Below are positions 18,503-44,854 of a stretch of 64,000 nucleotides of DNA, piece after piece. This DNA comes from Macrostomum lignano (lineage: Eukaryota). The notes beneath the pieces were generated by a model. It did no database searches and was not told where the DNA came from. It saw only the letters and a list, made by a program, of their open reading frames with translations. Positions within the stretch are counted from its first letter, which is position 1; each line of letters starts with the position of its first letter. Made by a program: the position numbers and the translations under genes. The stretch covers positions 372,001 to 436,000 of the forward strand of contig NIVC01000029.1 of the NCBI GenBank assembly GCA_002269645.1. The letters run 5' to 3'.

Positions 18503-18844
18503 TGCCGGTTGCCTGCATAAAATAACAACTAAATTCTGTAAAACACTGGCCTAAGTAAGTCTCTGTAAAATGATTCACAATGGACAAATTCACTTTTGCC
18601 TTCAGCTTGTAGCAACTAAATTCATAACCATATCGAAACCTGTACCCCCAGGTAGAAATAGACAATATATAGTAACATAAAAGTCCTCTACAGACATCCC
18701 AGAATTTTTATTACCTAGTGTAGTAGACGGCAATGACTTACAGAATGCTGCATTCAAATGAATGGTCGCTAAAAATATTGCAGACATTGGCATTCACGAT
18801 AAAAGAAACGAAGTACTAAAATGTAATTTTGAAAGAAGACACAT

Positions 18845-19180
18845 TGGCGCCCACTTCAGCACACAGTGGCGCCCACCGCTTCAGCACACGATGGCGCCCA
18901 CCGCTTCAGCACACAGTGGCGCCCAGTTCAGGACACAGTGGCGCCCACCGCTTCAGCACACAGTGGCGCCCAGTTCAGGACACAGTGGCGCCCACTTCAG
19001 CACACGATGGCGCCCACCGCTTCAGCACACAGTGGCGCCCAGTTCAGGACACAGTGGCGCCCACCGCTTCAGCACACAGTGGCGCCCAGTTCAGGACACA
19101 GTGGCGCCCACTTCAGCACACGATGGCGCCCACCGCTTCAGCACACAGTGGCGCCCAGTTCAGGACACAGTGGCGCCCAA
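18845..19180 (+). repeat. 25/21-bp minisatellite (GTGGCGCCCACCGCTTCAGCACACA)n
   Basis: Same family as 27095-28645. Confidence 0.95.
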
Positions 19181-19655: not shown

Positions 19656-21990
19656 ATGACGGCACTTTTTCTGCTTTTAGAATTATTGCTGCTTTTAGGC
19701 AGTAGCAAACTTGCGGTAGGCGCTGACAGTCGCTGCTCTGGGCGGCCCGGCTCGCAGTTCTGTCTGGTTGGCGGCGCTCTGGACGTCTCCTGCTCATCCG
19801 ACACCGCCTCTCTGGTGCTCAAATTCCAGAGCGTCGCCTCCTGGCCAGCGTCGGCCGCCTCTCCCGGTCGGGGCCTCGTTGGCTGCGACTCGGTTGACCA
19901 CTTGAAGGTCACCGGCTGGCAAGGTCCCGAGCTTGAGTCCGGACACACTGCTCAGCTACCGAATCTGTCATCGATGGAGATTCTCGACGGAAATTTAACG
20001 ACCGTTGGGCCCGACGTGTGCGGCAAGCGGCTGCGGCAGCTCAGTCTGGCCAGGAATCGAGTTCGGGACCTCAGCCAGCGAGCTCTGATCGGCTGCGGCA
20101 GTCTCGAGTCGCTCGACCTTAGCGAGAACCGCATCGAGAGGCTGCCGGACGGCCTGCTGGCCGCCTGCGGATCGCTGAGGACGCTGAAGCTGAGCGGCAA
20201 CCGGCTGAGTCAGCTGGGACCCCGGGCTCTGCAGGTGACTGGCTCAGGCTGCCATTTAACTCGTGTTGCTAGGGGGTGCTGGGAGCCCGGGCTCTGCAGG
20301 TGACTGGCTCAGGCTGCCATTTAACTCGTGTTGCTAGGGGGTGCTGGGAGCCCGGGCTCTGCAGGTGACTGGCTCAGGCTGCCATTTAACTCGTGTTGCT
20401 AGGGGGTGCTGGGAGCCCGGGCTCTGCAGGTGACTGGCTCAGGCTGCCATTTAACTCGTGTTGCTAGGGGTGGTTGGGAGCCCAACTGTGCAATTTCTCC
20501 TGAGGAAGAGAGGGGGCACCAGCTACAGAGGGGGCGCCAGCTACAGAGGGGGCGCCAGCTACAGAGGGGGCACCAGCTACAGAGGGGCGACAGCTACAGA
20601 GGGGGCGCCAGCTACAGAGGGGTCACCAGCTACAGAGGGGGCACCAGCTACAGAGGGGTGCCAGCTACAGAGGGGGCGCCAGCTACAGAGGGGGCACCAG
20701 CTACAGGTGGGCGCCAGCTAAAGGGGGGTTAGGATAAAATCTTAATAGAAGGTTGCCATTCATGCGACTCATGCAACTGAGGCTACTTCACCCAGCCATT
20801 TCAAAGCCAAGACTCTGGATATTAAAGCCCCAATCCAATCTGGTTGGACTCCCGCAGGGCGCCGTCAGCCTCTTCGAGCTGCACGCGCTCGGCAACCAGT
20901 TCCGCACCCTGGGCAGCCTCGAACGGGCCTTCGCCTCCAACCAGAGGCTCAGCCTCATCGACCTGCGCGACAACGAGCTGTTCGCGTACCTGCCCGCCTC
21001 CGACGACGGCCTCTGCGGTCCCGAGAACGTCACCGTGCGGCTGCACTTCGCCGGGTGTCCACCGGCTCCGGCGACTGACGCGGCCGTCTGTGAGACGGTG
21101 CGGCGACACCGCTGCTTGGGCAGCTCGGCGCACCTGCTGGTCACCTTCACCAGCTGTCAGGTGAGTCAAGGAATGATTTTGGAGGGATAGAGTGGCTCAA
21201 TGGTAAACGCGCAACGCCCTCGGAGAGCGCACACAAGCGCGTCAATACACAGGGTTTACAGCGGCCCTGACTTTCTAATCCTGTTAGGCATGTACACTCT
21301 CACGGCCCCTCGCGGAATCGACCTGATTGAGACTTATTTTCTCCTCTCACACAGGTTCCCATAGCAACCGAGTGCTCAGTCGTCGTTTCCGAAGTCCGAC
21401 CTCCAGCGGTGGTCGCTCAACAACAGCCGGAACCAACTTCGGTTAACGCAAAAGCAGCCACACCGACTACCCCAGCCTGTCCCAGCGTTGCCACGGCAAC
21501 AGTCGCATCCGACTGTCGATTTTTCACTCGCCTCAGCGAAGCGGCCGTCGCAGCCAAGTCGGATCCAGCCGTGTGGCTGCTGATTGCCCTGGCCGGCACT
21601 GTGCTCTTCGCTCTGCTTCAACTACTCGTCTCTCTTGCCGTCTGTCATCGGTTGAAGCTTCGCTTGGCTCGCCTGCAAGTGCGCGCCGAGCAGCTGGCCA
21701 GAGAGTGCTCCAGCCACCAGTCCTTCTGTCACAACCATCGATCGTCCATGCTATGTAGTCGGCAGTCCGGTCTCAGCGGAGGTCGCATGACCCCTAGCGG
21801 TCGGGGACCTTCGTCTCATTGCGGCGGCATCTCGGAGTTCGGCGACTCGACCGTGCCAACCTTTGCGACACTGACGGCGGTGCACACGATGCCGCAACAG
21901 CCGCTACTGACTGAGAAGCAGGGAGAACCGGACTCTGGCAGCAGCGGACTGCCCGACTCAGAGGAAGTCCCTCATGGAGATCAGGACTGA
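19656..21990 (+). CDS. LRR-containing type I membrane protein, paralog A (about 505 aa, 3 exons)
   Basis: Exons 19656-20234, 20858-21160 and 21355-21990, all phase 0 GT-AG. Signal peptide MTALFLLLELLLLLGSS; LRRs LRQLSLARNRV, LESLDLSENRI, LRTLKLSGNRL, LSLIDLRDNEL; TM VWLLIALAGTVLFALLQLLVSLAVC followed by HRLK. Confidence 0.88.
20213..20483 (+). repeat. 65-bp tandem repeat spanning the exon 1 donor site, 4 donor copies
   Basis: CCCGGGCTCTGCAG|GTGACT at 20221, 20286, 20351 and 20416. Confidence 0.95.
20511..20728 (+). repeat. 18-bp GCCAGCTACAGAGGGGGC minisatellite in LRR-A intron 1
   Basis: Read directly. Confidence 0.95.
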
Positions 21991-22109
21991 GTCCAGGGAG
22001 AACTTCGATTGCAATGGTGATTTTGCTTTGAATGATAAGATTTTGGACAGTTTTTTTCTGTGTCTGATTTCTTCATTGCTGCGTCCGAATGCAAAAACAT
22101 TATCTGATA

Positions 22110-22400
22110 AAGTGTCAGATCAAGTGTCAGATATAGTGTCATATCAAGTGTCAGATATAGTGTCAGATCAAGTGTCAGATATAGTGTCAGATCAAGTGTC
22201 AGATCAAGTGTCAGATCAAGTGTCAGATCAAGTGTCAGATCAAGTGTCAGATCAAGTGTCAGATCAAGTGTCAGATCAAGTGTCAGATCAAGTGTCAGAT
22301 CAAGTGTCAGATCAAGTGTCAGATCAAGTGTCAGATCAAGTGTCAGATCAAGTGTCAGATCAAGTGTCAGATCAAGTGTTTGATCAAGTGTCAGATCATA
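22110..22400 (+). repeat. 12-bp minisatellite (GTGTCAGATCAA)n
   Basis: Read directly. Confidence 0.95.
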
Positions 22401-23039
22401 TCAATTAGAGTATCATGTAGTGTCAGATAGTGTCAGACAGATTGTCAGATAGACTGTTTGATAAAAATGTCAGGTAGTGTGTCAGGCGGGGTCAGTATTC
22501 AGTCATACAGTGTCAGATAATTTTTTTCATGATTTTTCTCTGGCTTGCTCTGAAACAAATATCTTAGCCAATTCATGACTAACATAGCATGTAATGTCTC
22601 CCTGGATATCAATGTAAATCATGTACATCATGTATTCATACTTAAGCGGCCAGCTCGATGCTGTAAAACGTTATAAATGTTTTTTCTCACTACGATTAAG
22701 CATGTATTGTCACGCGAAATAGCCGATGCAACTTCGTATTTAATGCTTTAATAACTTGCAACTCGGATTATTTGATTTTTTTATGTACTGAATAATACCT
22801 AGTCGGAATGAATAGTTTCAAATTTGATGCAACATGAACTTGTTTCTGTTACTTGCAGCGAAATTCGGTTTGCTAGCTTATTGAAACATTGCAATTGTCA
22901 ACGTTTTTATGTAGAAAGAAAATAGATCCTTTAGTATTTGCTCCGACTTCCATAGTGCATCAAGGACTTTAAAGATGATCATTCAGATAAATAGATCAGA
23001 TGGGTCTCATTTGTGTCTGTCAGTGTCTGTATGGAGTTT

Positions 23040-23775
23040 GTCTGGTGTCTTCCAGGTGTCTGTCTGGTGTCTGTCTGGTGTCTGTCTGGTGTCTGTCTCG
23101 TGTCTGTCTGGTGTCTGTCTGGTGTCCTCCGGGTGTCTGTCTGGTGTCTGTCTTGGTGTCTGTCTTGGTGTCTTCCAGGTGTCTGTCTCGTGTCTGTCTG
23201 GTGTCTGTCTTGGTGTCTGTCTTGGTGTCTTCCAGGTGTCTGTCTGGTGTCTGTCTGGTGTCTGTCTCGTGTCTGTCTTGGTGTCTTCCAGGTGTCTGTC
23301 TGTTGTCTGTCTGGTGTCTGTCTTGGTGTCTGTCTGGTGTCTGTCTGGTGTCTGTCTGGTGTCTGTCTGGTGTCTGTCTCGTGTCTGTCTGGTGTCTGTC
23401 TGGTGTCTTCCAGGTGTCTGTCTGGTGTCTGTCTAGTGTCTTCCGGGTGTCTGTCTGGTGTATGTCTGGTGTCTTCCAGGTGTCTGTCTGGTTTCTGTCT
23501 GGTGTCTGTCTGGTGTCTGTCTGGTGTCTTCCAGGTGTCTGTCTGGTGTCTTCCAGGTGTCTATCTGGTGTCTGTCTGGTGTCTGTCTGGTGTCTGTCTG
23601 GTGTCTGTCTCGTGCTGTCTGTCTGGTGTCTTTCTCGTGTCTGTCTGGTGTCTTCCCGGACTCTGTCTGGTGTCTGTCTTGGTGTCTTCCATGTGTCTGT
23701 CTGGTGTCTGTCTTGGTGTCTTCCAGGTGTCTGTCTGGTGTCTTCCAGGTGTCTTTCTGGTGTCTTCCAGGTGTC
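23040..23775 (+). repeat. About 11-bp degenerate array (GGTGTCTGTCT)n
   Basis: Read directly. Confidence 0.93.
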
Positions 23776-24275
23776 TGCTTGGTTCACCTCCGGTATATGT
23801 CTAGCGTTTTCTCTTGTTTTGATACTGTCATCATTTGCAAATGTGTTGAAATCAAAGAAAATTTCTTATTAATTTTCTCAACGTTAGTTTACACCAAGCT
23901 GACATAACAAATGAATTCTAAAATTATCACTGATGCGTCTAGTTTAACCAAAAACACCGCTCCTTATCACTGACAAATCGTGATAAATTTTGATGTTATT
24001 AAAAATGCTTGAATTACGAAGAAACCACTGGCGCCATCGGCTGTCTGGAAGCTGGTAAATTTTTCTAAACAATCTTTTGACAGCCAAAGTAGCCGCGCGT
24101 GTTGCGCAGGGCTTGAAAAAAAGCGGAGGCATCGAACTGCCACACACGAAGCTGCGGCATGGCTGATAAGTAGAGAGAGCGGCTTGACTTCCGTGCACTG
24201 CGGCTTCGTAAACACAAGCGGTCCGTGTACCATCTGGCTGGTGCAAGGGTTTCCGAATGTAGCATCTGGGCAGGG

Positions 24276-25058
<783 letters not shown>

Positions 25059-25644
25059 CAAGTTTCCAATGTCAGGCTTTCCAGGTATCCAGCTATGAAA
25101 TCCATGACACTGGGTCTGCAGATTGGTCAGGTTTATACACTGGGCTGAAGTGTCGCACTGGGTATTTCTTATCTGCACTGGGACTGAATTCGGTGTAAGC
25201 GCAGGTAGTTTTTGTTTTTAGGTTTCAACTATGTGGATTTTTTTACTACAAACAGTGACTGGTGGCTTAGCCTCAGTGTGACAGTCAGATTGTAATAAAC
25301 TTGGCTTGGGCTAGCCAGATAAGAAACCGTTGGCTAGGCTAAAGTTAAAGCTGACTTCAACCTATATATTTCGAGCCATATTCAAAGTGCTTATGAGCTG
25401 TGTTCCGTATCTACCATGGTATACCAGTGCATACTGGATTCGGCCATGTAAACTTTGCACAGACTGCACTGACTGAAGGGAAGTGTTTTGTACCGGATAT
25501 CAACTAGGATAACGATGCATTCCTCTCGTGATTGTCCCGGGTTCGAAAATCCTTGATCCAAGCTAGCTAGGAATTTGAGTTAACGTTTAGTTCCAAATTA
25601 GGGGCATTTTCAGTGCTAAACTAACATCAATTACATAACATCAA

Positions 25645-26638
25645 TTAGTGGCGACAAACTAATTGAGTCATTGTTGCGACAAACTAATTGAGTCATTGTT
25701 GCGCTAAACTAATTGAGTCATTGTTGCGCTAAACTAATTGAGTCATTGTTGCGCTAAACTAATTGAGTCATTGTGGCGACAAACTAATTGAGTCATTGTT
25801 GCGCTAAACTAATTGAGTCATTGTGGCGCTAAACTAATTGAGTCATTGTGGTGACAAACTAATTGAGTCATTGTGGTGCCAAACTATTTGAGTCATTGTT
25901 GCGCTAAACTAATTGAGTCATTGTGGCGCTAAACTAATTGAGTCATTGTGGTGACAAACTAATTGAGTCATTGTGGTGCCAAACTAATTGAGTCATTGTG
26001 GTGCCAAACTATTTGAGTCATTGTGGCTCCAAACTAATTGAGTCATTGTGGCGCCAAACTAATTGAGTCATTGTGGCGACAAACTAATTGAGTCATTGTG
26101 GCTCCAAACTAATTGAGTCATTGTGGCTCCAAACTAATTGAGTCATTGTGGCTCCAAACTAATTGAGTCATTGTGACGCCAAACTAATTGAGTCATTGTG
26201 GCGACAAACTAATTGAGTCATTGTTGCGCTAAACTAATTGAGTCATTGTGGTGCCAAACTATTTGAGTCATTGTGGCGCCAAACTAATTGAGTCATTGTG
26301 GTGCCAAACTAATTGAGTCATTGTGGCGCCAAACTAATGGAGTCATTGTGGCGACAAACTAATTGAGTCATTGTGGTGCCAAACTATTTGAGTCATTGTG
26401 GCGCCAAACTAATTGAGTCATTGTGGCGCCAAACTAATTGAGTCATTGTGGTGCCAAACTATTTGAGTCATTGTGGCGCCAAACTAATTGAGTCATTGTG
26501 GCGCCAAACTAATTGAGTCATTGTGGCGCCAAACTAATGGAGTCATTGTGGCGACAAACTAATTGAGTCATTGTGGTGCCAAACTATTTGAGTCATTGTG
26601 GCGCCAAACTAATTGAGTCATTGTGGCGCCAAACTAAT
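25645..26638 (+). repeat. 25-bp minisatellite (AAACTAATTGAGTCATTGTGGCGCC)n, about 40 units
   Basis: Read directly; the near-constant part contains TAATTG and TGAGTCA. Confidence 0.97.
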
Positions 26639-27094
26639 ACACCTCATACGATAAACTTTAAGCATCTAGAAACGATCAATATTATAGTTTTTTATAAGCA
26701 AAACTATTTTGTTTACTAGAGTTTCACAACTCTGTAGCGTTAGTTTAAAGCTATTTTTGCTTTTACTCAACCGGGTAAGGCGTGTGTCACCGGTTCAAGG
26801 TCAGGTGACCCGGTGGTTAAAAAAGCCGTTACAAAAGAGTAGCAAATGAGCAGCTGTTTCACTATCCTGGCATTTCCCTTTTCCTGGTTTGCGTGACCCA
26901 GCGCTTCGGTCGCAGGGCATTGAGTAGAACAGGCAATATTTAGCACTGATTGATTTATTACCCGATTCTCTAAAATGCTTTGGCTTGGCATTTTTTTTAT
27001 AACTGAACAGGCCATTATTCTTGGCCTGCGTTGCTTGCTGGAGTAGTCTGTGAGTTGCAGAGCCCACCTCCAGTGACTGCCACTTAAAAAAAAC

Positions 27095-28645
27095 TGTGGC
27101 GCCCACCGCTTCAGGACACACTGGCGCCCACCGCTTCAGGACACAGTGGCGCCCACCGCTTCAGCACACATTGGCGCCCACCGCTTCAGGACACAGTGGC
27201 GCCCACCGCTTCAGCACACAGTGGCGCCCACCGCTTCAGGACACAGTGGCGCCCACCGCTTCAGGACACAGTGGCGCCCACCGCTTCAGCACACATTGGC
27301 GCCCACCGCTTCAGGACACAGTGGCGCCCACCGCTTCAGCACACAGTGGCGCCCACCGCTTCAGGACACAGTGGCGCCCACCGCTTCAGCACACATTGGC
27401 GCCCACCGCTTCAGGACACAGTGGCGCCCACCGCTTCAGCACACAGTGGTGCCCACCGCTTCAGGACACACTGGCGCCCACCGCTTCAGGACACAGTGGT
27501 GCCCACCGCTTCAGGACACAGTGGCGCCCACCACTTCAGGACACACTGGCGCCCACCGCTTCAGGACACACTGGCGCCCACCGCTTCAGCACACATTGGC
27601 GCCCACCGCTTCAGCACACATTGGCGCCCACCGCTTCAGGACACAGTGGCGCCCACCGCTTCAGCACACAGTGGTGCCCACCGCTTCAGCACACAGTGGC
27701 GCCCACCGCTTCAGCACACAGTGGTGCCCACCGCTTCAGCACACAGTGGCGCCCACCGCTTCAGGACACAGTGGCGCCCACCGCTTCAGCACACAGTGGT
27801 GCCCACCGCTTCAGCACACAGTGGCGCCCACCGCTTCAGCACACAGTGGCGCCCACCGCTTCAGCACACAGTGGCGCCCACCGCTTCAGCACACAGTGGT
27901 GCCCACCGCTTCAGGACACACTGGCGCCCACCGCTTCAGCACACAGTGGCGCCCACCGCTTCAGCACACAGTGGTGCCCACCGCTTCAGGACACAGTGGC
28001 GCCCACCACTTCAGGACACAGTGGCGCCCACTTCAGCACACAGTGGCGCCCACCGCTTCAGCACACACTGGCGCCTACCACTTCAGCACACAGTGGCGCC
28101 CAGTTCAGCACACAGTGGCGCCCAGTTCAGCACACAGTGGCGCCCACCACTTCAGCACACAGTGGCGCCCACCACTTCAGCACACACTGGCGCCCACCAC
28201 TTCAGCACACACTGGCGCCTACCACTTCAGCACACACTGGCGCCTACCACTTCAGCACACACTGGCGCCCAGTTCAGCACACAGTGGCGCCCACCACTTC
28301 AGCACACACTGGCGCCCACCGCTTCAGCACACAGTGGCGCCCACCACTTCAGCACACAGTGGCGCCCAGTTCAGCACACAGTGGCGCCCAGTTCAGCACA
28401 CAGTGGCGCCCACCACTTCAGCACACAGTGGCGCAAACCGCTTCAGGACACAGTGGCGCCCACCACTTCAGCACACACTGGCGCCCACCGCTTCAGGACA
28501 CAGTGGCGCCCACCACTTCAGCACACAGTGGCGCCCACCACTTCAGCACACACTGGCGCCCAGTTCAGGACACAGTGGCGCCCACCACTTCAGCACACGA
28601 TGGTGCCCACCACTTAAGCACACAGTGGCGCCCACTTCAGCACAG
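27095..28645 (+). repeat. 25-bp minisatellite (GTGGCGCCCACCGCTTCAGCACACA)n, 1.55 kb
   Basis: Read directly. Confidence 0.97.
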
Positions 28646-29637
28646 GACAAACAGGGTGAAGCATTAGCTTTTCTCATTCAAAGGGCAGTCTGTTATCACT
28701 CACTCATTCTCATATGCATCAGTCTGGTCCGTTCGTGCTATCAAATTATTTTTGATAGTTGCGTATGTCCCCACATTATATAGCAGCTGGCATATCACAG
28801 GAGATGCTGGAGTTCGCATCGGTTATATTTTCTTATCTAAGAAGCCTTTCAAAGCAAGTACAAGGATACATAAATGCTAGAAAAAGGAGCAGGTTTGTTT
28901 AAACAGAAGTTTTCAAAAGTGAACACTTATATAATTTTAGCAGTTTTAGCTAGACGAGAAAAAACTGGCCTATGCAACAAGGCACTAAAGGGGAAATGGT
29001 TTTGACTTCTATAAATTCATGCTTTGCTACAGAAATTGCGCAGTCTACGAGTATAGGCTTCTTTTAGAAGCACTAGTATAGACCAGATTATACGTTTTTG
29101 CTTTCTCGATTGCTCTCTTCCACTCTGACTGGTTGCTAAGGCTGAAATAATTGTCTAAAAAGTTTTCAATCTTGCAGCAGTTCTGCGTCACTGCCACCTG
29201 TTTGCAGAAATTGAGCCGAAAACTCTCTGGTAGAAGCACAGGTTAATATGCAAATAAAGCATTCTGGAATTGACAGGCAAGAGTGACACCTTGACCTTCT
29301 TCATTAATATTCAGTCATTTATAATAAGCCAAAAAATAAACTCTACTCAGTAGTCAAGTCTCAAACAGAATTTTTGCTTAAGTATTGAAATCGGGTGCTC
29401 TCTTTCATTTATTTTTTCGAGATAAAAATGACTTGATCAGCTGCTATTCAAAGCACATAGATTGAATAATTTGAACGTATAAAACTGGTCGCTGTTTAAA
29501 TACACTCGCTTAGTATAGTGGCGCCGATTCAAACTCAATAATGTCTACTAAAATATTATAGCAGTTTCCAAGCCAGCAAATTTGCAATCCTTAGCGGGAG
29601 AATCAAACATTTAGTAGTCCTTGTTAAAGAGTTGCTT

Positions 29638-29772
29638 TTCACTGTTTATGGCCCAAACTGGGGTCTGTGGAGCAGCCAATTTGGAAACTCATGTAGACAA
29701 ACACACGGATATGACAGACGATAAGAGATCAGCGACCTACCGCAGACCCCAAGTTGGGCCATAGACAATGAA
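29638..29772. mobile_element. About 135-bp MITE-like element with about 32-bp imperfect TIRs
   Basis: Left TTCACTGTTTATGGCCCAAACTGGGGTCTGTG vs reverse complement of right TTCATTGTCTATGGCCCAACTTGGGGTCTGCG; no clear TSD. Confidence 0.6.
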
Positions 29773-29920
29773 TAGCTAGTCTTCAAGTGCGCCAAGTGCT
29801 TCTGGGGCTGAATTGGCTTGGGAAATGCTTTATTTCAATTATACTAAAACACCACGTGAATAAAATGAGACTAGTCTACAGCATGTAGAGCGCTGACGCA
29901 ATCAACTCCAACTCAATCGA

Positions 29921-32544
29921 TTATTGCAACTGAGTTTCATACCGCCGACCACTTGACTCGGCGTCATCCGCGATAAACAATTCCAGCTGTTGAACTTCAA
30001 CGTGATTCGGGTCGTCGCAATCTGAGGCGCCTTCCACAACCGAGCGGCACCTGCTGTTGCAGCCTGTTCGGCAGTGTGGCGGCAAACTTGCTGTCGGCGC
30101 TAGAAGCGAGTGCCGACTGTACAGAGTCTGGAAGCGTTTCAGTTGCAGGTCGGCTGCGTCGATTCCAGAGCCCAGTAGCGGCTCTCGGCACACCTGCAGT
30201 CGGGCCATCTGCAGCTTCAGCCGATGACAAACCACCAAGGAGGTGATCAGAATGACTAGACAGAGGGCCACACTGCCAGCAAGGCTGTACAGCAGCCAGA
30301 CGCCGTCTGGGTAGAGGCCGAATCTGCGGAGTAGCAACGATTCGATGGAGGATACGTCGGTACCGACTTGAATACTGTTCAAAGTTGGACAGACAGCAGG
30401 CGGTGTTGGGGCCGCAGTCTCTGATTCTTTTCTTGCCGTTGTTGACGCTCTGCCAGTTGGTGAACAGCTTGATCGATGCATGGAATCCAGCGACACCTGA
30501 CAGCTGGTGAAGATGACCAGCAGGTGCGCCGAGCTGCCCAAGCAGCGGTGTCGCCGCACCGTCTCACAGACGGCCGCGTCAGTCGCCGGAGCCGGTGGAC
30601 ACCCGGCGAAGTGCAGCCGCACGGTGACGTTCTCGGGACCGCAGAGGCCGTCGTCGGAGGCGGGCAGGTACGCGAACAGCTCGTTGTTGCGCAGATCGAT
30701 GAGGCTGAGCCTCTGGTTGGAGGCGAAGGCCCGTTCGAGGCTGCCCAGGGTGCTGAACTGGTTGCTGAGGGCGTGCAGCTCGAAGAGGCTGACGGCGCCC
30801 TGCGGGAGTTCAACCAGATTGGATTGGGGCTTTAATGTCCAGAGTCTTGGCTTTGAAATGGCTGGGTGAAGTAGCCTCAGTTGCATGAGTTGCATGAATG
30901 GCAACCTTCTATTAAGATTTTATCCTAACCCCCCTTTAGCTGGCACCCCTCTGTAGCTGGTGCCCCCTCTGTAACTGGTGCCCCCTCTGTAGCTGGTGCC
31001 CCCTCTGTAGCTGGCATCCTTTCTGTAGCTGGCGCCCCCTCTGTAGCTGACACCCCTCTGTAGCTGGCACCCCCTCTGTAGCTGGCGCCCCCTCTGTAGC
31101 TGACACCCCTCTGTAGCTGACACCCCTCTGTAGCTGGTGCCCCCTCTGTAGCTGGTGCCCCCTGTGTAGCTGGTGCCCCCTGTGTAGCTGGTGCCCCCTC
31201 TGTAGCTGGTGCCCCCTCTGTAGCTGGTGCCCCCTGTGTAGCTGGTGCCCCCTCTGTAGCTGGTGCCCCCTCTGTAGCTGGCACCCCCTCTGTAGCTGGC
31301 GCCCCCTCTGTAGCTGGCGCCCCCTCTGTAGCTGGCGCCCCCTCTGTAGCTGGCGCCCCCTCTGTAGCTGACACCCCTCTGTAGCTGGCACCCCTCTGTA
31401 GCTGGCACCCCCTCTGTAGCTGGTGCCCCCTCTGTAGCTGGCACCCCTCTGTAGCTGGCACCCCCTCTGTAGCTGGTGCCCCCTCTGTAGCTGGCGCCCC
31501 CTCTGTAGCTGGCACCCCTCTGTAGCTGGCATCCCCTCTGTAGCTGGTGCCCCCTCTGTAGCTGGCGCCCCCTCTGTAGCTGGCATCCCCTCTGTAGCTA
31601 GTGCCCCCTCTTTTTGAAAATGAGAAATTGCACAGTTGGGCTCCCAGCACCCCTAGCAACACGAGTTAAATGGCAGCCTGAGCCAGTCACCTGCAGAGCC
31701 CGGGCTCCCAGCACCCCCTAGCAACACGAGTTAAATGGCAGCCTGAGCCAGTCACCTGCAGAGCCCGGGCTCCCAGCACCCCCTAGCAACACGAGTTAAA
31801 TGGCAGCCTGAGCCAGTCACCTGCAGAGCCCGGGCTCCCAGCACCCCCTAGCAACACGAGTTAAATGGCAGCCTGAGCCAGTCACCTGCAGAGCCCGGGG
31901 TCCCAGCACCCCCTAGCAACACGAGTTAAATGGCAGCCTGAGCCAGTCACCTGCAGAGCCCGGGGTCCCAGCTGACTCAGCCGGTTGCCGTTCAGCTTCA
32001 GCGTCCTCAGCGATCCGCAGGCGGCCAGCAGGCCGTCCGGCAGCCTCTCGATGCGGTTGTAGCTGAGGTCGAGCGACTCGAGACTGCCGCAGCCGATCAG
32101 AGCTCGCTGGCTGAGGTCCCGAACTCGATTCCTGGCCAGACTGAGCTGCCGCAGCCGTTTGCCGCACACGTCGGGCCCAACGGTCGTTAAACTTCCGTTG
32201 AGAATCTCCATCGATGACAGATTCGGTAGCTGAGCAGTGTGTCCGGACTCAAGCTCGGGACCTTGCCAGCCGGTGACCTTCAAGTGGTCAACCGAGTCGC
32301 AGCCAACAAGGCCCCGACCGGGAGAGGCGGCCGACGCTGGCCAGGAGGCGAAGCTCTGGAATAGGAGCACCAGAGAGGCGGTGTCGGATGAGCAGGAGAC
32401 GTCCAGAGTGCCGCCACCCAGACAGACCTTCGAGCCGGGCCGACTGCTGTGGCAAGTCATCTCAGGCTCAACCGATTGGCTACCGCTCAGCACCAGGGTC
32501 AGCAGCAGCATAAACTGAATCAGCTTTCGCAATAGTCCGGCCAT
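29921..32544 (-). CDS. LRR-containing type I membrane protein, paralog B (2 exons)
   Basis: Exon 1 32544-31951 (MAGLLRKLIQFMLLLTLVLSG...GPRALQ|gtgact); exon 2 30799-29921 open through stalk, TM (VWLLYSLAGSVALCLVILITSLVVC-HRLK) and tail. Ectodomain near-identical to paralog A. Confidence 0.85.
30928..31612 (-). repeat. 18-bp GCCAGCTACAGAGGGGGC minisatellite in LRR-B intron 1
   Basis: Reverse complement of the unit at 20511; about 3 times longer. Confidence 0.95.
31638..31971 (-). repeat. 65-bp donor-spanning tandem repeat in LRR-B, 5 donor copies
   Basis: AGCCAGTCAC-CTGCAG at 31681, 31746, 31811, 31876 and 31941. Confidence 0.95.
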
Positions 32545-38701: not shown

Positions 38702-39935
38702 TTTTAATTTAATCATGGATACGGAAATCAGACTTGCGAGACTGAAGATTTTCTCGTTGGCATAGCAGAGACTCGTCACGCTTTGCACCAGATCATTGAC
38801 GAACGTCTGGAACCTTGCTGCCATCTAGCCTTCTTGCCCCTTATGGTCCGACCCGTCCAGATGTTAAAACCTGTCTTGTCGATGAAAATCAAGTGAATCT
38901 CAGAGGGGCACAATCCAGTCAACCGCAGTGATTGGATTGAGCCCTGAGGATTGAGCCCTGAGCCCTGAGCTGGGCCTTTTGTCGCGAATGGCACTTTGCA
39001 CCTTGCGCAGCACTTCCAAATAATAGTCACCATTGACTGTCTGGCCGGCAGGAACAGCCTGATCGAAGATGATGCCCTCGCGATCAAAGAAAGTCACATG
39101 CATGATTTTCAGCTGAGAAATGCTCCTTGCAGCCTTCACTGGCCTTGGAGAGCCGGGCCGGCACCAAGATGCGCTCTGCCGCTTCAGTTCAGCCTCCCAC
39201 GACTGCGCCCAAGTCTCATCATAAGCCACGATTCTCTGAAGAAACTGAAGTCCCTCGCGCCTGTGTCTTTGCAGATGAGCTGCGCTGAGAGTTGTGCGGC
39301 AGACCTTCTGCTCCTCTGACAGGATGTGAGGCACCCACTTTGCGCAAATCTTCCTGACTCCAAGATCTTCAGTCAGAACTTTATGGATTGTGTCATGAGA
39401 CACGCCAGTAGACTCAGGCAGCTTCCACCTTCTGCACCAACTGTGTTGTTCGCGCTGAACACGTTCTCTTTGCCGTCAAGAACACTTGCCATCAAGCGAC
39501 GAACAGTGTCATATGACGGGCAAGAGTCTGCCATGGCTCGATGCATGATTGCATATGTGTCTGTTTTGGAGATAGACCAAAAGCAAGGCGTGGAACTTGA
39601 TGATAGTTCGTTTGTCTTCTTTAGAGAAACTTTTTATGTAGAAGATTTTTATGTATTTTATGTAACAGGCACTTAATTATATACCAGGCAGTCGCCTGGG
39701 TTTAGCCGCATTTTGTTACGTAACGTACAAAAATATATATTGGTCAATAAGCAAAACTTTTCTGACAGCCGTCGTACGGACCTTCACTCATAGCCACTGA
39801 GAAATTTTCATCGGCCTATCGCCGCGCTGGTGCTCCCAGCTGATAAAATTGAACTCCGCTAAAATTGAACGAGTGTCGACCATAAGACAGAAAATTTTCA
39901 GTCTCGCAAGTCTGATTTCTGTATCTATAATTAAA
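38702..39935 (-). mobile_element. TIR-bounded element carrying degenerate mariner and Tc1/IS630-like transposase fragments
   Basis: About 38-bp inverted repeats at 38717-38754 and 39889-39926. Mariner motifs KEDKRTIIKFH, CPSYDTVRR, KWVPHIL, YDETW, TVNGDYY (about 39640-38975); separate IFIDKTGFNIWT motif (about 38900-38780). The third-D region was not found. Confidence 0.8.
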
Positions 39936-43528: not shown

Positions 43529-44854
43529 ATGAAAGGATATCATTTCGAAATATTCGTCAAAGACCTCATCGACGAAGGTTACCTCAGTAATGATATTAGC
43601 ATATCTGCCTACTTGAATGATACAAGCAAAATTGGAGAGAGCAACCTGAAGCTTTACGACCCGGATAATTTGTATTGCTCTGTGAACCAGACTTTGCTTT
43701 CAAACTGGCAATGGCTTCTTGGCGGCAGTCCATCCAATGTTGAGTCGCTTTTGTGCGTTGGAATAAAGAGCTTCGTGTGCAAAGCAAGACACATTTCCTT
43801 GTTCCCAGCGGTGGAGGAGGTGATGATGGCGTTCAATACTGTGTTTGCAGTCGCCAACCTCCTGACTCTGGCGATCTGGTGCCGTTTCAAGGAGCCGAAG
43901 CCGCAGACGCCAACTAGACCAGAGGTTGGCATTCAATTGCTGCTCCTTCGGTTCTTCAGCGCTTTTAGTCTAGCAGCTTGCTTCGTGTACATTTTTTTTG
44001 GTTCATCGCCAGTTACGACCGTCAACTCGGTCGCGAGTGCCGTGATTATAAGCGTAGCGCGTTGGATCGTCGTGGACACTGCCACAATATTTATGTTCTT
44101 CACCAAAACGAGCGCCGCATTCAGTCTAATTACTGCCACCTTTTTAATTGAGTACTCGCATCCGGGACAGAAACTGCTGCTTTTCACTACCAAAAAGAGA
44201 GCCCTAGCTGCATTCTTTGTATTGTTCGTTACTTTGCTGCTGCTGTCGTTCGCGATGTCCACAATTTATGGCTACATTTACTGTCCAAACGAAGATTCAT
44301 TGCTCAAAATGAAACTAAGAATTTCGCATCGGTTACATGAAATTCTCTACGACCGGATGAACATCCTACACGCTGTCCTATTGGTGCTCAGCGTCATTTT
44401 GCTCATCGTGTTCGCCTCCAAGCGTTGCTGCGCGTGCTGCCGCTGTGATGGCAGTTACACGCATAGCGAGTCGCGTGCCAGTGAATCTGTAGCTTACCTG
44501 ACTCAACTGGAAGACTCTGAGCAGTCTGAAAGCGAGGCTAACGAATCCGCGGTTGTACTGCAGGCGGGAAATTCTTCAGAACTGCTGGCAAACGAACTGA
44601 GGCGACTGATATTCTGGCAACAGGTGGTGCTAGTGCTTCCTCAATTAGTTTTTATCGTCAAATTTCACTCTCTTAGACTAGTTGAGAATAGCTTTGGTAA
44701 GTTCCAACTTATTGGCTTTGGTTTAATTGCTGCCGAAGCACTGTTCGTTGCCGCGATGCCAGTCGTGACTCCAATTGTCAGTCCGACATTTCGCAGAGGT
44801 TTGGCTTCTGCTACGAACGAAGTGAAAAATTATTTGCCTTGTCGTCTGCCATAG
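43529..44854 (+). CDS. Intronless divergent seven-transmembrane (class A GPCR-like) orphan receptor, 441 aa
   Basis: Seven hydrophobic segments. TM1 ANLL (GN-like), LIEY at the TM3 end (DRY position), LP in TM6, MPVVT at the NPxxY position, helix-8-like SPTFRR. Long N-terminus with N-x-T sequons; acidic third intracellular loop. Confidence 0.78.
   Translation: MKGYHFEIFVKDLIDEGYLSNDISISAYLNDTSKIGESNLKLYDPDNLYCSVNQTLLSNWQWLLGGSPSNVESLLCVGIKSFVCKARHISLFPAVEEVMMAFNTVFAVANLLTLAIWCRFKEPKPQTPTRPEVGIQLLLLRFFSAFSLAACFVYIFFGSSPVTTVNSVASAVIISVARWIVVDTATIFMFFTKTSAAFSLITATFLIEYSHPGQKLLLFTTKKRALAAFFVLFVTLLLLSFAMSTIYGYIYCPNEDSLLKMKLRISHRLHEILYDRMNILHAVLLVLSVILLIVFASKRCCACCRCDGSYTHSESRASESVAYLTQLEDSEQSESEANESAVVLQAGNSSELLANELRRLIFWQQVVLVLPQLVFIVKFHSLRLVENSFGKFQLIGFGLIAAEALFVAAMPVVTPIVSPTFRRGLASATNEVKNYLPCRLP

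Follow-up and report, generated by a model that had tools for sequence, protein, structure and literature searches.

Two convergent leucine-rich repeat (LRR) genes of Macrostomum lignano, A and B, encode predicted membrane receptors whose ectodomains are nearly identical at the DNA level, and gene conversion of the ectodomain between them is established by site patterns in which two locus copies are compared. The genes lie in a 64,000-nucleotide stretch (the window) of assembly Mlig_3_7, contig NIVC01000029.1, about 372001-436000; this contig is 1.39 Mb long and contains both arms of the inverted pair. The joint explanation favoured here is that A and B are old paralogs, that the B ectodomain was overwritten from A in at least two events, and that B then acquired replacements quickly. 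The probability of this explanation as a whole is put at about 0.85.

A near-identical tract in two diverged genes

Two inverted arm pairs were returned by a repeat finder, both 97% identical: 19743-20483 with 32442-31702 (741 nt) and 20655-21163 with 31002-30494 (509 nt). There were two pairs instead of one because the tandem arrays of intron 1 differ in copy number between A and B. Inside the tract, 21 of the 795 coding sites differed in the A/B codon alignment, with no indels, and the unique 3' part of intron 1 differed at 3 of 143 nt. The proteins differed at 14 amino acids (95% identity over 265 residues). The initial annotation had called the tract nearly identical, non-repeat intron 1 sequence included, and sharply bounded. 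This describes the DNA well; the proteins are still set apart by 14 residues, and the tract continues 3 nt past the CAG codon at which it had been said to stop, to 21163/30494.

Outside the tract, 355 of the 642 aligned coding sites differed (55%), and the tail codons of A and B were near saturation whereas the silent sites of the tract were homogenised. A two-breakpoint maximum chi-square scan placed the limits at A codons 30 and 294, with a chi-square of 510 compared to at most 20 in 100 permutations; the tract was sharply bounded, with diverged but homologous sequence on either side. Beyond the tract, similarity at the DNA level was detectable only in a 126-nt segment encoding the transmembrane (TM) and juxtamembrane region (Table 1). 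The tails were 29% identical as proteins and clearly homologous (tblastn E = 6e-12), and both carried VWLL..LAG..VCHRLKLxxARLQV, the motif that the initial annotation had quoted. Its description of signal peptides, stalks, TM segments and tails as diverged yet homologous was accurate. On the 5' side, the tract began where the mature protein begins. The 3' end fell within 3 nt of the start of A intron 2, at a point where B has no intron.

Two further copies of the locus were located. A cluster look-up returned another A-type gene, P0009 (Mlig005206g1), on contig NIVC01002739.1 (locus L004). At locus L004, A'' (505 aa) and B'' (489 aa) were both intact and converged as A and B do, with introns and arrays as in the window, and the limits of the A''/B'' tract were the same as those of A/B. 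Locus L001 (contig NIVC01000100.1) contained A', and its sequence ended in an expanded 25-bp satellite before any B copy. L001 and L004 differed by about 1.5%, and in unique non-coding DNA the window stood 3-7% apart from each of them.

Among A, B, A'' and B'', 331 sites outside the tract grouped the genes by orthology (A with A'', B with B''), none by locus, and none in the cross pattern. Inside the tract no site grouped them by orthology, four grouped them by locus, and one showed the cross pattern. Because the patterns differ inside and outside the tract, the ectodomain module has a history of its own, and mere conservation is excluded. Conversion of the ectodomain, as proposed by the initial annotation, was strongly supported by these segment-wise patterns over two locus copies.

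Several further observations concern the copies and the tract edges. Intron 2 (194-243 nt) was present in A, A' and A'' and not in B or B'', an intron gain or loss between paralogs at the tract edge. Compared with A and A'', exon 3 of A' (L001 11612-12250) lacked a single base at each of two sites, which gave the truncated 427-aa model Mlig009071g1; either the assembly has an indel error there, or A' is a null allele. Silent divergence between A and A'' in exon 3 (21355-21990 and L004 11614-12249) was 2/168 sites, below the tract (13/213) and flanking non-coding DNA (3-7%), in small counts. GC content at third codon positions was 0.82 in the converted exons (coding parts of 19743-21160) and 0.58-0.62 in the tails of the same genes. 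GC-biased conversion is not clearly its cause, the converted intron being only 47% GC.

Timing, direction and later change of the ectodomains

Synonymous divergence (dS) in the tract was 0.024 for A-B, 0.057 for A''-B'', 0.064 for A-A'' and 0.049 for B-B'', with all pairs other than A-B within 0.049-0.064; in the tail, dS for B-B'' was 0.078. The low A-B value relative to all other pairs indicates that the window pair was homogenised after the loci had separated, and the A''-B'' value places the last homogenisation of the L004 pair close to the locus split. Together these sequence distances point to at least two conversion events.

The A-type protein was nearly unchanged between loci (nonsynonymous divergence, dN, 0.009). 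B and B'' differed both from the A-type and from each other (dN 0.063), with no shared derived state. In the unique intron segment, B'' was quite different over the initial ~55 nt, where B had the version common to A, A' and A''. Conservation of the A-type, the lack of a shared derived state in the B-types, and the A-type intron segment of B mark A as the probable donor, so conversion most likely ran from A to B.

The proposed mechanism is non-allelic gene conversion, in which the ectodomain module of B would be replaced with that of A; the replaced stretch would start at mature residue 1 (codon 30), span intron 1 and reach the end of exon 2. Most plausibly, a break in one inverted copy was repaired from the other copy without crossover. 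The older event would be about as old as the split of the two locus copies, and the younger would be confined to the locus of the window. Extension of the heteroduplex was probably limited by loss of homology, on the 3' side by A intron 2 and on the 5' side by the diverged signal-peptide codons. Selection against conversion of the tail is a possible alternative account of the tract limits. After each reset, replacements would build up in the B ectodomain at the neutral rate or faster, with the B tail and the whole of A staying constrained. Arm-to-arm conversion occurs in inverted repeats and palindromes, where non-crossover repair keeps the arms alike. Like palindrome arms, the A/B arms are inverted, a few kb apart and about 97% identical, and the spacer has the same orientation in both loci. 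Unlike those of large palindromes, they are internal segments of 1.4-2 kb within each gene, flanked by old diverged homology.

Intron 1 contained two tandem arrays. An 18-bp G-rich minisatellite (AGAGGGGGCGCCAGCTAC) was found at 20509-20728 in A (12 copies), 30929-31611 in B (38 copies) and about 19110-20360 of L004 in B'' (about 70 copies). It lies inside the tract and is a possible break-prone site. A 65-bp array was found at 20213-20483 in A, 31638-31972 in B and about 20400-20530 of L004 in B'', with 4.2 copies in A, 5.2 in B, three in A' and A'', and two in B''. In the 65-bp array, which straddles the junction of exon 1 and intron 1, the terminal 21 nt of exon 1 and the GT donor next to them recur. 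Each gene consequently has two to five identical candidate splice donors, of which only the first keeps the frame. The downstream donor copies were rejected for the main product, as 65 nt shifts the frame.

Nonsynonymous and synonymous changes in the tract numbered 1:3 on the A branch, 1:7 on the A'' branch, 14:2 on the B branch and 18:5 on the B'' branch, and the B-type counts (32:7) differed from the A-type counts (2:10; Fisher p = 7e-5). After spectrum correction, 32 replacements were seen in the B-types compared to 26.5 expected (P = 0.03), and two were seen in the A-types compared to 8.3 expected (P = 0.0002). The dN/dS of the A-type ectodomain was 0.14. Between B and B'', dN/dS was 0.24 in the tail and 1.28 in the ectodomain (tail 8:11, tract 35:10; Fisher p = 0.009). 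As the tail is constrained, B is not a decaying gene, and it is the ectodomain specifically that is unconstrained or diversifying.

Substitutions were placed on the LRRs by motif register, not by structure model; an AlphaFold model from a 3-sequence alignment was too poor to use (mean predicted local distance difference test score, pLDDT, 45). The LRR region had seven A/B differences, six of them at x7, x8 or x10 of LxxLxLxxNxL, on the predicted solvent-exposed concave face. Among replacements in B and B'' together, 9/15 fell in a predefined exposed set of six positions where 25% were expected (P = 0.004). B and B'' had each changed on their own at positions 56, 60 and 205 (P = 0.05); positions 37, 56, 60, 157 and 205 had three states among the four genes, and D111N with N113S relocates an N-glycosylation sequon. 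In terms of sequence, the replacement pattern leans towards diversifying selection on the predicted binding face.

Several points weigh against the joint explanation. Grouping by locus in the tract comes from only four sites, and the lower A-B dS from five synonymous differences compared to 10-13 in the other pairs. Loci L004 and L001 are either homeologous copies or deeply diverged haplotypes. Two cross patterns were found: a 9-nt intron block in the spacer between the arrays (about 20500-20508 / about 31613-31621), where A and B'' have CTGAGGAAG and B and A'/A'' have ATTTTCAAA, and tract codon 231, which is GAC in A and B'' and AAC in B and A'/A''. Read from these sites, the history is more mosaic than a plain overwrite of B by A. 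They would fit a reciprocal exchange of patches via the flanking tandem arrays, or an exchange between loci. For the ectodomains, the enrichment at exposed positions in B and B'' reached only P = 0.07 with the classical xxLxLxx set, and it was significant for B alone and not for B'' alone (P = 0.16 or higher). The excess of dN/dS over 1 in the B-types was only marginally significant in small counts, and relaxed constraint remains a candidate.

Gene models and neighbouring sequence

Gene A encodes 505 aa, and its spliced translation was exactly PAA93353.1 / Mlig002333g1. Gene B encodes 490 aa and was the same model as PAA93354.1 / Mlig014032g1 minus a 61-aa 5' read-through. The genes are arranged tail to tail, and the 7.9 kb that separate their stop codons are rich in satellite DNA. 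The annotation of Mlig_3_7 was derived from RNA-seq transcript assemblies (PMC5730564), so both models imply transcription, with the caveat of multi-mapping in the shared part. The gene id was absent from the searchable literature.

Table 1. Positions of the A/B genes, the converted tract and the older homology remnant in the window.
Feature	Position	Strand	Content
Gene A exon 1	19656..20234	+	signal peptide (codons 1-29, diverged from B), N-cap, LRR1-4
Gene A intron 1	20235..20857	+	65-bp array, 18-bp minisatellite, 143-nt unique 3' part 20715-20857
Gene A exon 2	20858..21160	+	LRR5-6, Cys-rich C-cap, ends ...TSCQ
Gene A intron 2	21161..21354	+	no counterpart in B; tract ends at its first 3 nt
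Gene A exon 3	21355..21990	+	Pro/Thr-rich stalk, TM (about aa 367-390), cytoplasmic tail about 115 aa, TGA stop
Gene B exon 1	31951..32544	-	own signal peptide (codons 1-34), N-cap, LRR1-4
Gene B intron 1	30800..31950	-	65-bp array, 18-bp minisatellite, unique 3' part
Gene B exon 2	29921..30799	-	LRR5-6, C-cap, stalk, TM, tail without intron, TAA stop
Converted tract, A arm (probable donor)	19743..21163	+	codons 30-294 plus intron 1
Converted tract, B arm (probable recipient)	30494..32442	-	codons 35-299 plus intron 1
TM/juxtamembrane remnant of old A/B homology	21570..21695	+	matches 30302-30177, 126 nt, 66%

Both genes encode predicted type I single-pass LRR membrane proteins, each with a Pro/Thr-rich stalk. 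The LRR block matched Pfam LRR_8 above the gathering score (E = 5e-19 in A, 1e-18 in B) and contained six LxxLxLxxNxL units in each protein. Cysteine clusters flanked the LRRs on both sides as putative N- and C-caps; UniRef names included 'LRRNT' or 'LRRCT domain-containing', and Pfam LRRNT/LRRCT gave no match at E <= 0.1. Hydrophobic segments were found only at aa 1-20 (putative signal peptide) and about 365-390 (TM), and the AlphaFold helix starting at 365 was of low confidence. The tails were about 100-115 aa long and contained no Pfam domain. Read-through of intron 2 leads to a stop codon in A, whereas B stays open in frame at the same point. A cryptic B intron after the CAG was rejected: the sole GT..AG candidate seen by eye was 47 nt long and breaks the frame.

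A homolog search found this ectodomain in M. lignano proteins alone, and a profile built on the C-cap, stalk, TM and tail, run on 1.84 billion representatives, drew no match from outside M. lignano. By these searches, the A/B family is an orphan restricted to Macrostomum. A search with the B tail alone gave no match, not even B itself, probably owing to a word-index limit. Matches in PDB and the sequence databases were generic LRR proteins: IGFALS, LRRC15, LGR4, TLR3, LRRC32 and TRIL. The best match outside Macrostomum, TRIL, was about 40% identical over 18% of the query, and others were 29-39% identical over 18-26%.

In the surrounding sequence, a 25-bp satellite (GTGGCGCCCACCGCTTCAGCACACA) lay between the genes at 27096-28635, with a short related array upstream of A at 18839-19179; the intergenic array was longer than 4 kb in L001 and much shorter in L004. 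A tandem segmental duplication of about 3 kb occupied about 5120-8650 and about 8660-11665; it contained a 21-bp satellite as well as (ATAG)n. Both window copies were matched by one and the same stretch in L001, and likewise in L004, which suggests that the segment is present there only once. By eye alone, the fragment of an open reading frame (ORF) at 38900-39403 (-) looked like a mariner/Tc1-type transposase. An intronless 441-aa ORF at 43529-44854 (+) had a multi-pass membrane appearance by eye and no Pfam domain. This ORF had no homolog but itself in the protein database and no annotated counterpart, and was of no use for reaching B'.

Alternative explanations and comparison with known systems

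Two alternatives deny the conversion itself. That the ectodomain is merely under much stronger purifying selection than the rest has next to no probability. The constraint on the A-type ectodomain is what such selection would give, but synonymous sites and unique intron sequence were homogenised as well, the 331 orthology-pattern sites all lay outside the tract, and the B-type ectodomain was the least constrained part of the gene. An assembly artefact, in which one ectodomain would stem from collapse with, or copying of, the other or a redundant haplotig, would be in keeping with an assembly known as redundant and repeat-rich (PMC5730564). It is very unlikely, since the pair recurs in convergent layout on an independent contig, with differences of its own; A and B are also set apart by 21 substitutions without indels, by how many copies their arrays hold and by an intron block, and both arms lie within one contig.

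The remaining alternatives concern why conversion recurs. It may be a neutral by-product of frequent conversion between close inverted repeats with recombination-prone minisatellites, the B ectodomain being relaxed and the pairing not adaptive. This is possible, though we would not expect it. The two tandem arrays inside the tract agree with it, as do B changes that are mostly GC-to-AT, as fresh mutations would be, and a B-type dN/dS of about 1.2-1.3 between pairs of genes and, from the 14:2 counts, about 2.6 on the B branch, which is only marginally above neutral (P = 0.03). The constrained B tail and the intact ORFs kept by both B and B'' are at odds with it, as are the concave-face enrichment (with the six-position set) and the independent hits at positions 56, 60 and 205.

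Selection could instead maintain conversion so that B tracks A, the two being true paired receptors for the same ligand with different signalling, as in vertebrate Siglec, KIR, CEACAM and NKG2. Near-identical ligand-binding domains in neighbouring genes, a hallmark of paired receptors, were present. The ectodomains were homogenised while tails, signal peptides and upstream DNA remained distinct, the B tail was under purifying selection, the tract boundaries were alike in both loci, and there are precedents (PMC5701461, PMC3210942, PMC2832619). The reading is nevertheless unlikely. The initial annotation had read the pair as the same sensor with different output, a design known from immune receptor families. 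This was only partly right, and none of the features examined supported its functional side. Of the sensor, 14 residues differ, those in the LRRs mostly at predicted ligand-contact positions, and the ectodomains diverge there between resets, with a B-type dN/dS of 1 or more. As to output, a motif scan found no immunoreceptor tyrosine-based inhibitory (ITIM), switch (ITSM) or activation (ITAM) motif in either tail, and the A tail lacks tyrosine altogether. The TM segments are free of Lys, Arg, Asp and Glu. Pfam finds only LRR families in A and B, and neither a TIR nor any other signalling domain turned up. The stalk, TM and tail also have no relatives outside M. lignano in the profile search. 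The label 'paired receptor' is an analogy when applied to A and B, and no observation ties the genes to immunity.

The joint explanation, with A as donor and B as recipient, has close parallels. In the Siglec, CEACAM, KIR and NKG2 pairs, conversion of ligand-binding exons is domain-limited, recurrent and often directional (PMC5701461, PMC2832619, PMC3210942). As in Siglec-11/16, Siglec-5/14, CEACAM1/3, KIR and NKG2, conversion at the A/B locus joins neighbouring paralogs and is limited to ligand-binding exons and introns, the TM and tail are kept distinct, and the events would be recurrent and directional. So far as sequence can tell, the A/B locus works like vertebrate paired-receptor loci at the DNA level. 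It differs from them in that the fold is LRR, not immunoglobulin or C-type lectin, ITIM, ITAM and charged TM residues are missing, the recipient diverges quickly between events, and the host is a flatworm without known homologous signalling adaptors.

The vertebrate TLR1/2/6/10 family combines gene conversion with positive selection (PMC3125219). Like A and B, its members are LRR type I membrane receptors encoded by neighbouring paralogs, with a mosaic of converted and diverging parts; their LRR surface residues are under selection, as those of B may be. Unlike them, A and B have no TIR domain and only six LRRs, and belong to an orphan Macrostomum family. The predicted architecture of A and B is also similar to that of LRRC15, LRRC32/GARP, TRIL and GPIb-type proteins: signal peptide, capped LRR block, stalk, TM and short non-enzymatic tail. 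Similarity to LRRC15, LRRC32 and TRIL is that of generic LRR repeats, and no orthology can be claimed.

A more specific conjecture, which we consider a long shot, is that A and B are an LRR-based invertebrate analogue of paired receptors. By analogy, A would be a conserved 'master' and B a counter-receptor or decoy that has a different tail and whose binding face is diversified by pathogens or sexual conflict and reset from A at intervals, through directional conversion. If true, it would represent an independently evolved donor-acceptor design, in a hermaphrodite.

The A/B locus is a new, clean example of a well-known process, and neither a new mechanism nor a new kind of system. It offers a compact case of gene conversion that is domain-limited and, on the favoured explanation, directional and recurrent. 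The asymmetry between the probable donor (dN/dS about 0.1) and recipient (about 1.3 or more) is instructive. The tract also calls for care when genes are annotated and reads mapped in the redundant M. lignano assembly. M. lignano is tractable by transgenesis and RNA interference, and its recent genome duplication gives internal replicate loci; the locus could therefore be used to study the interplay of conversion and diversification in non-vertebrate receptor genes.

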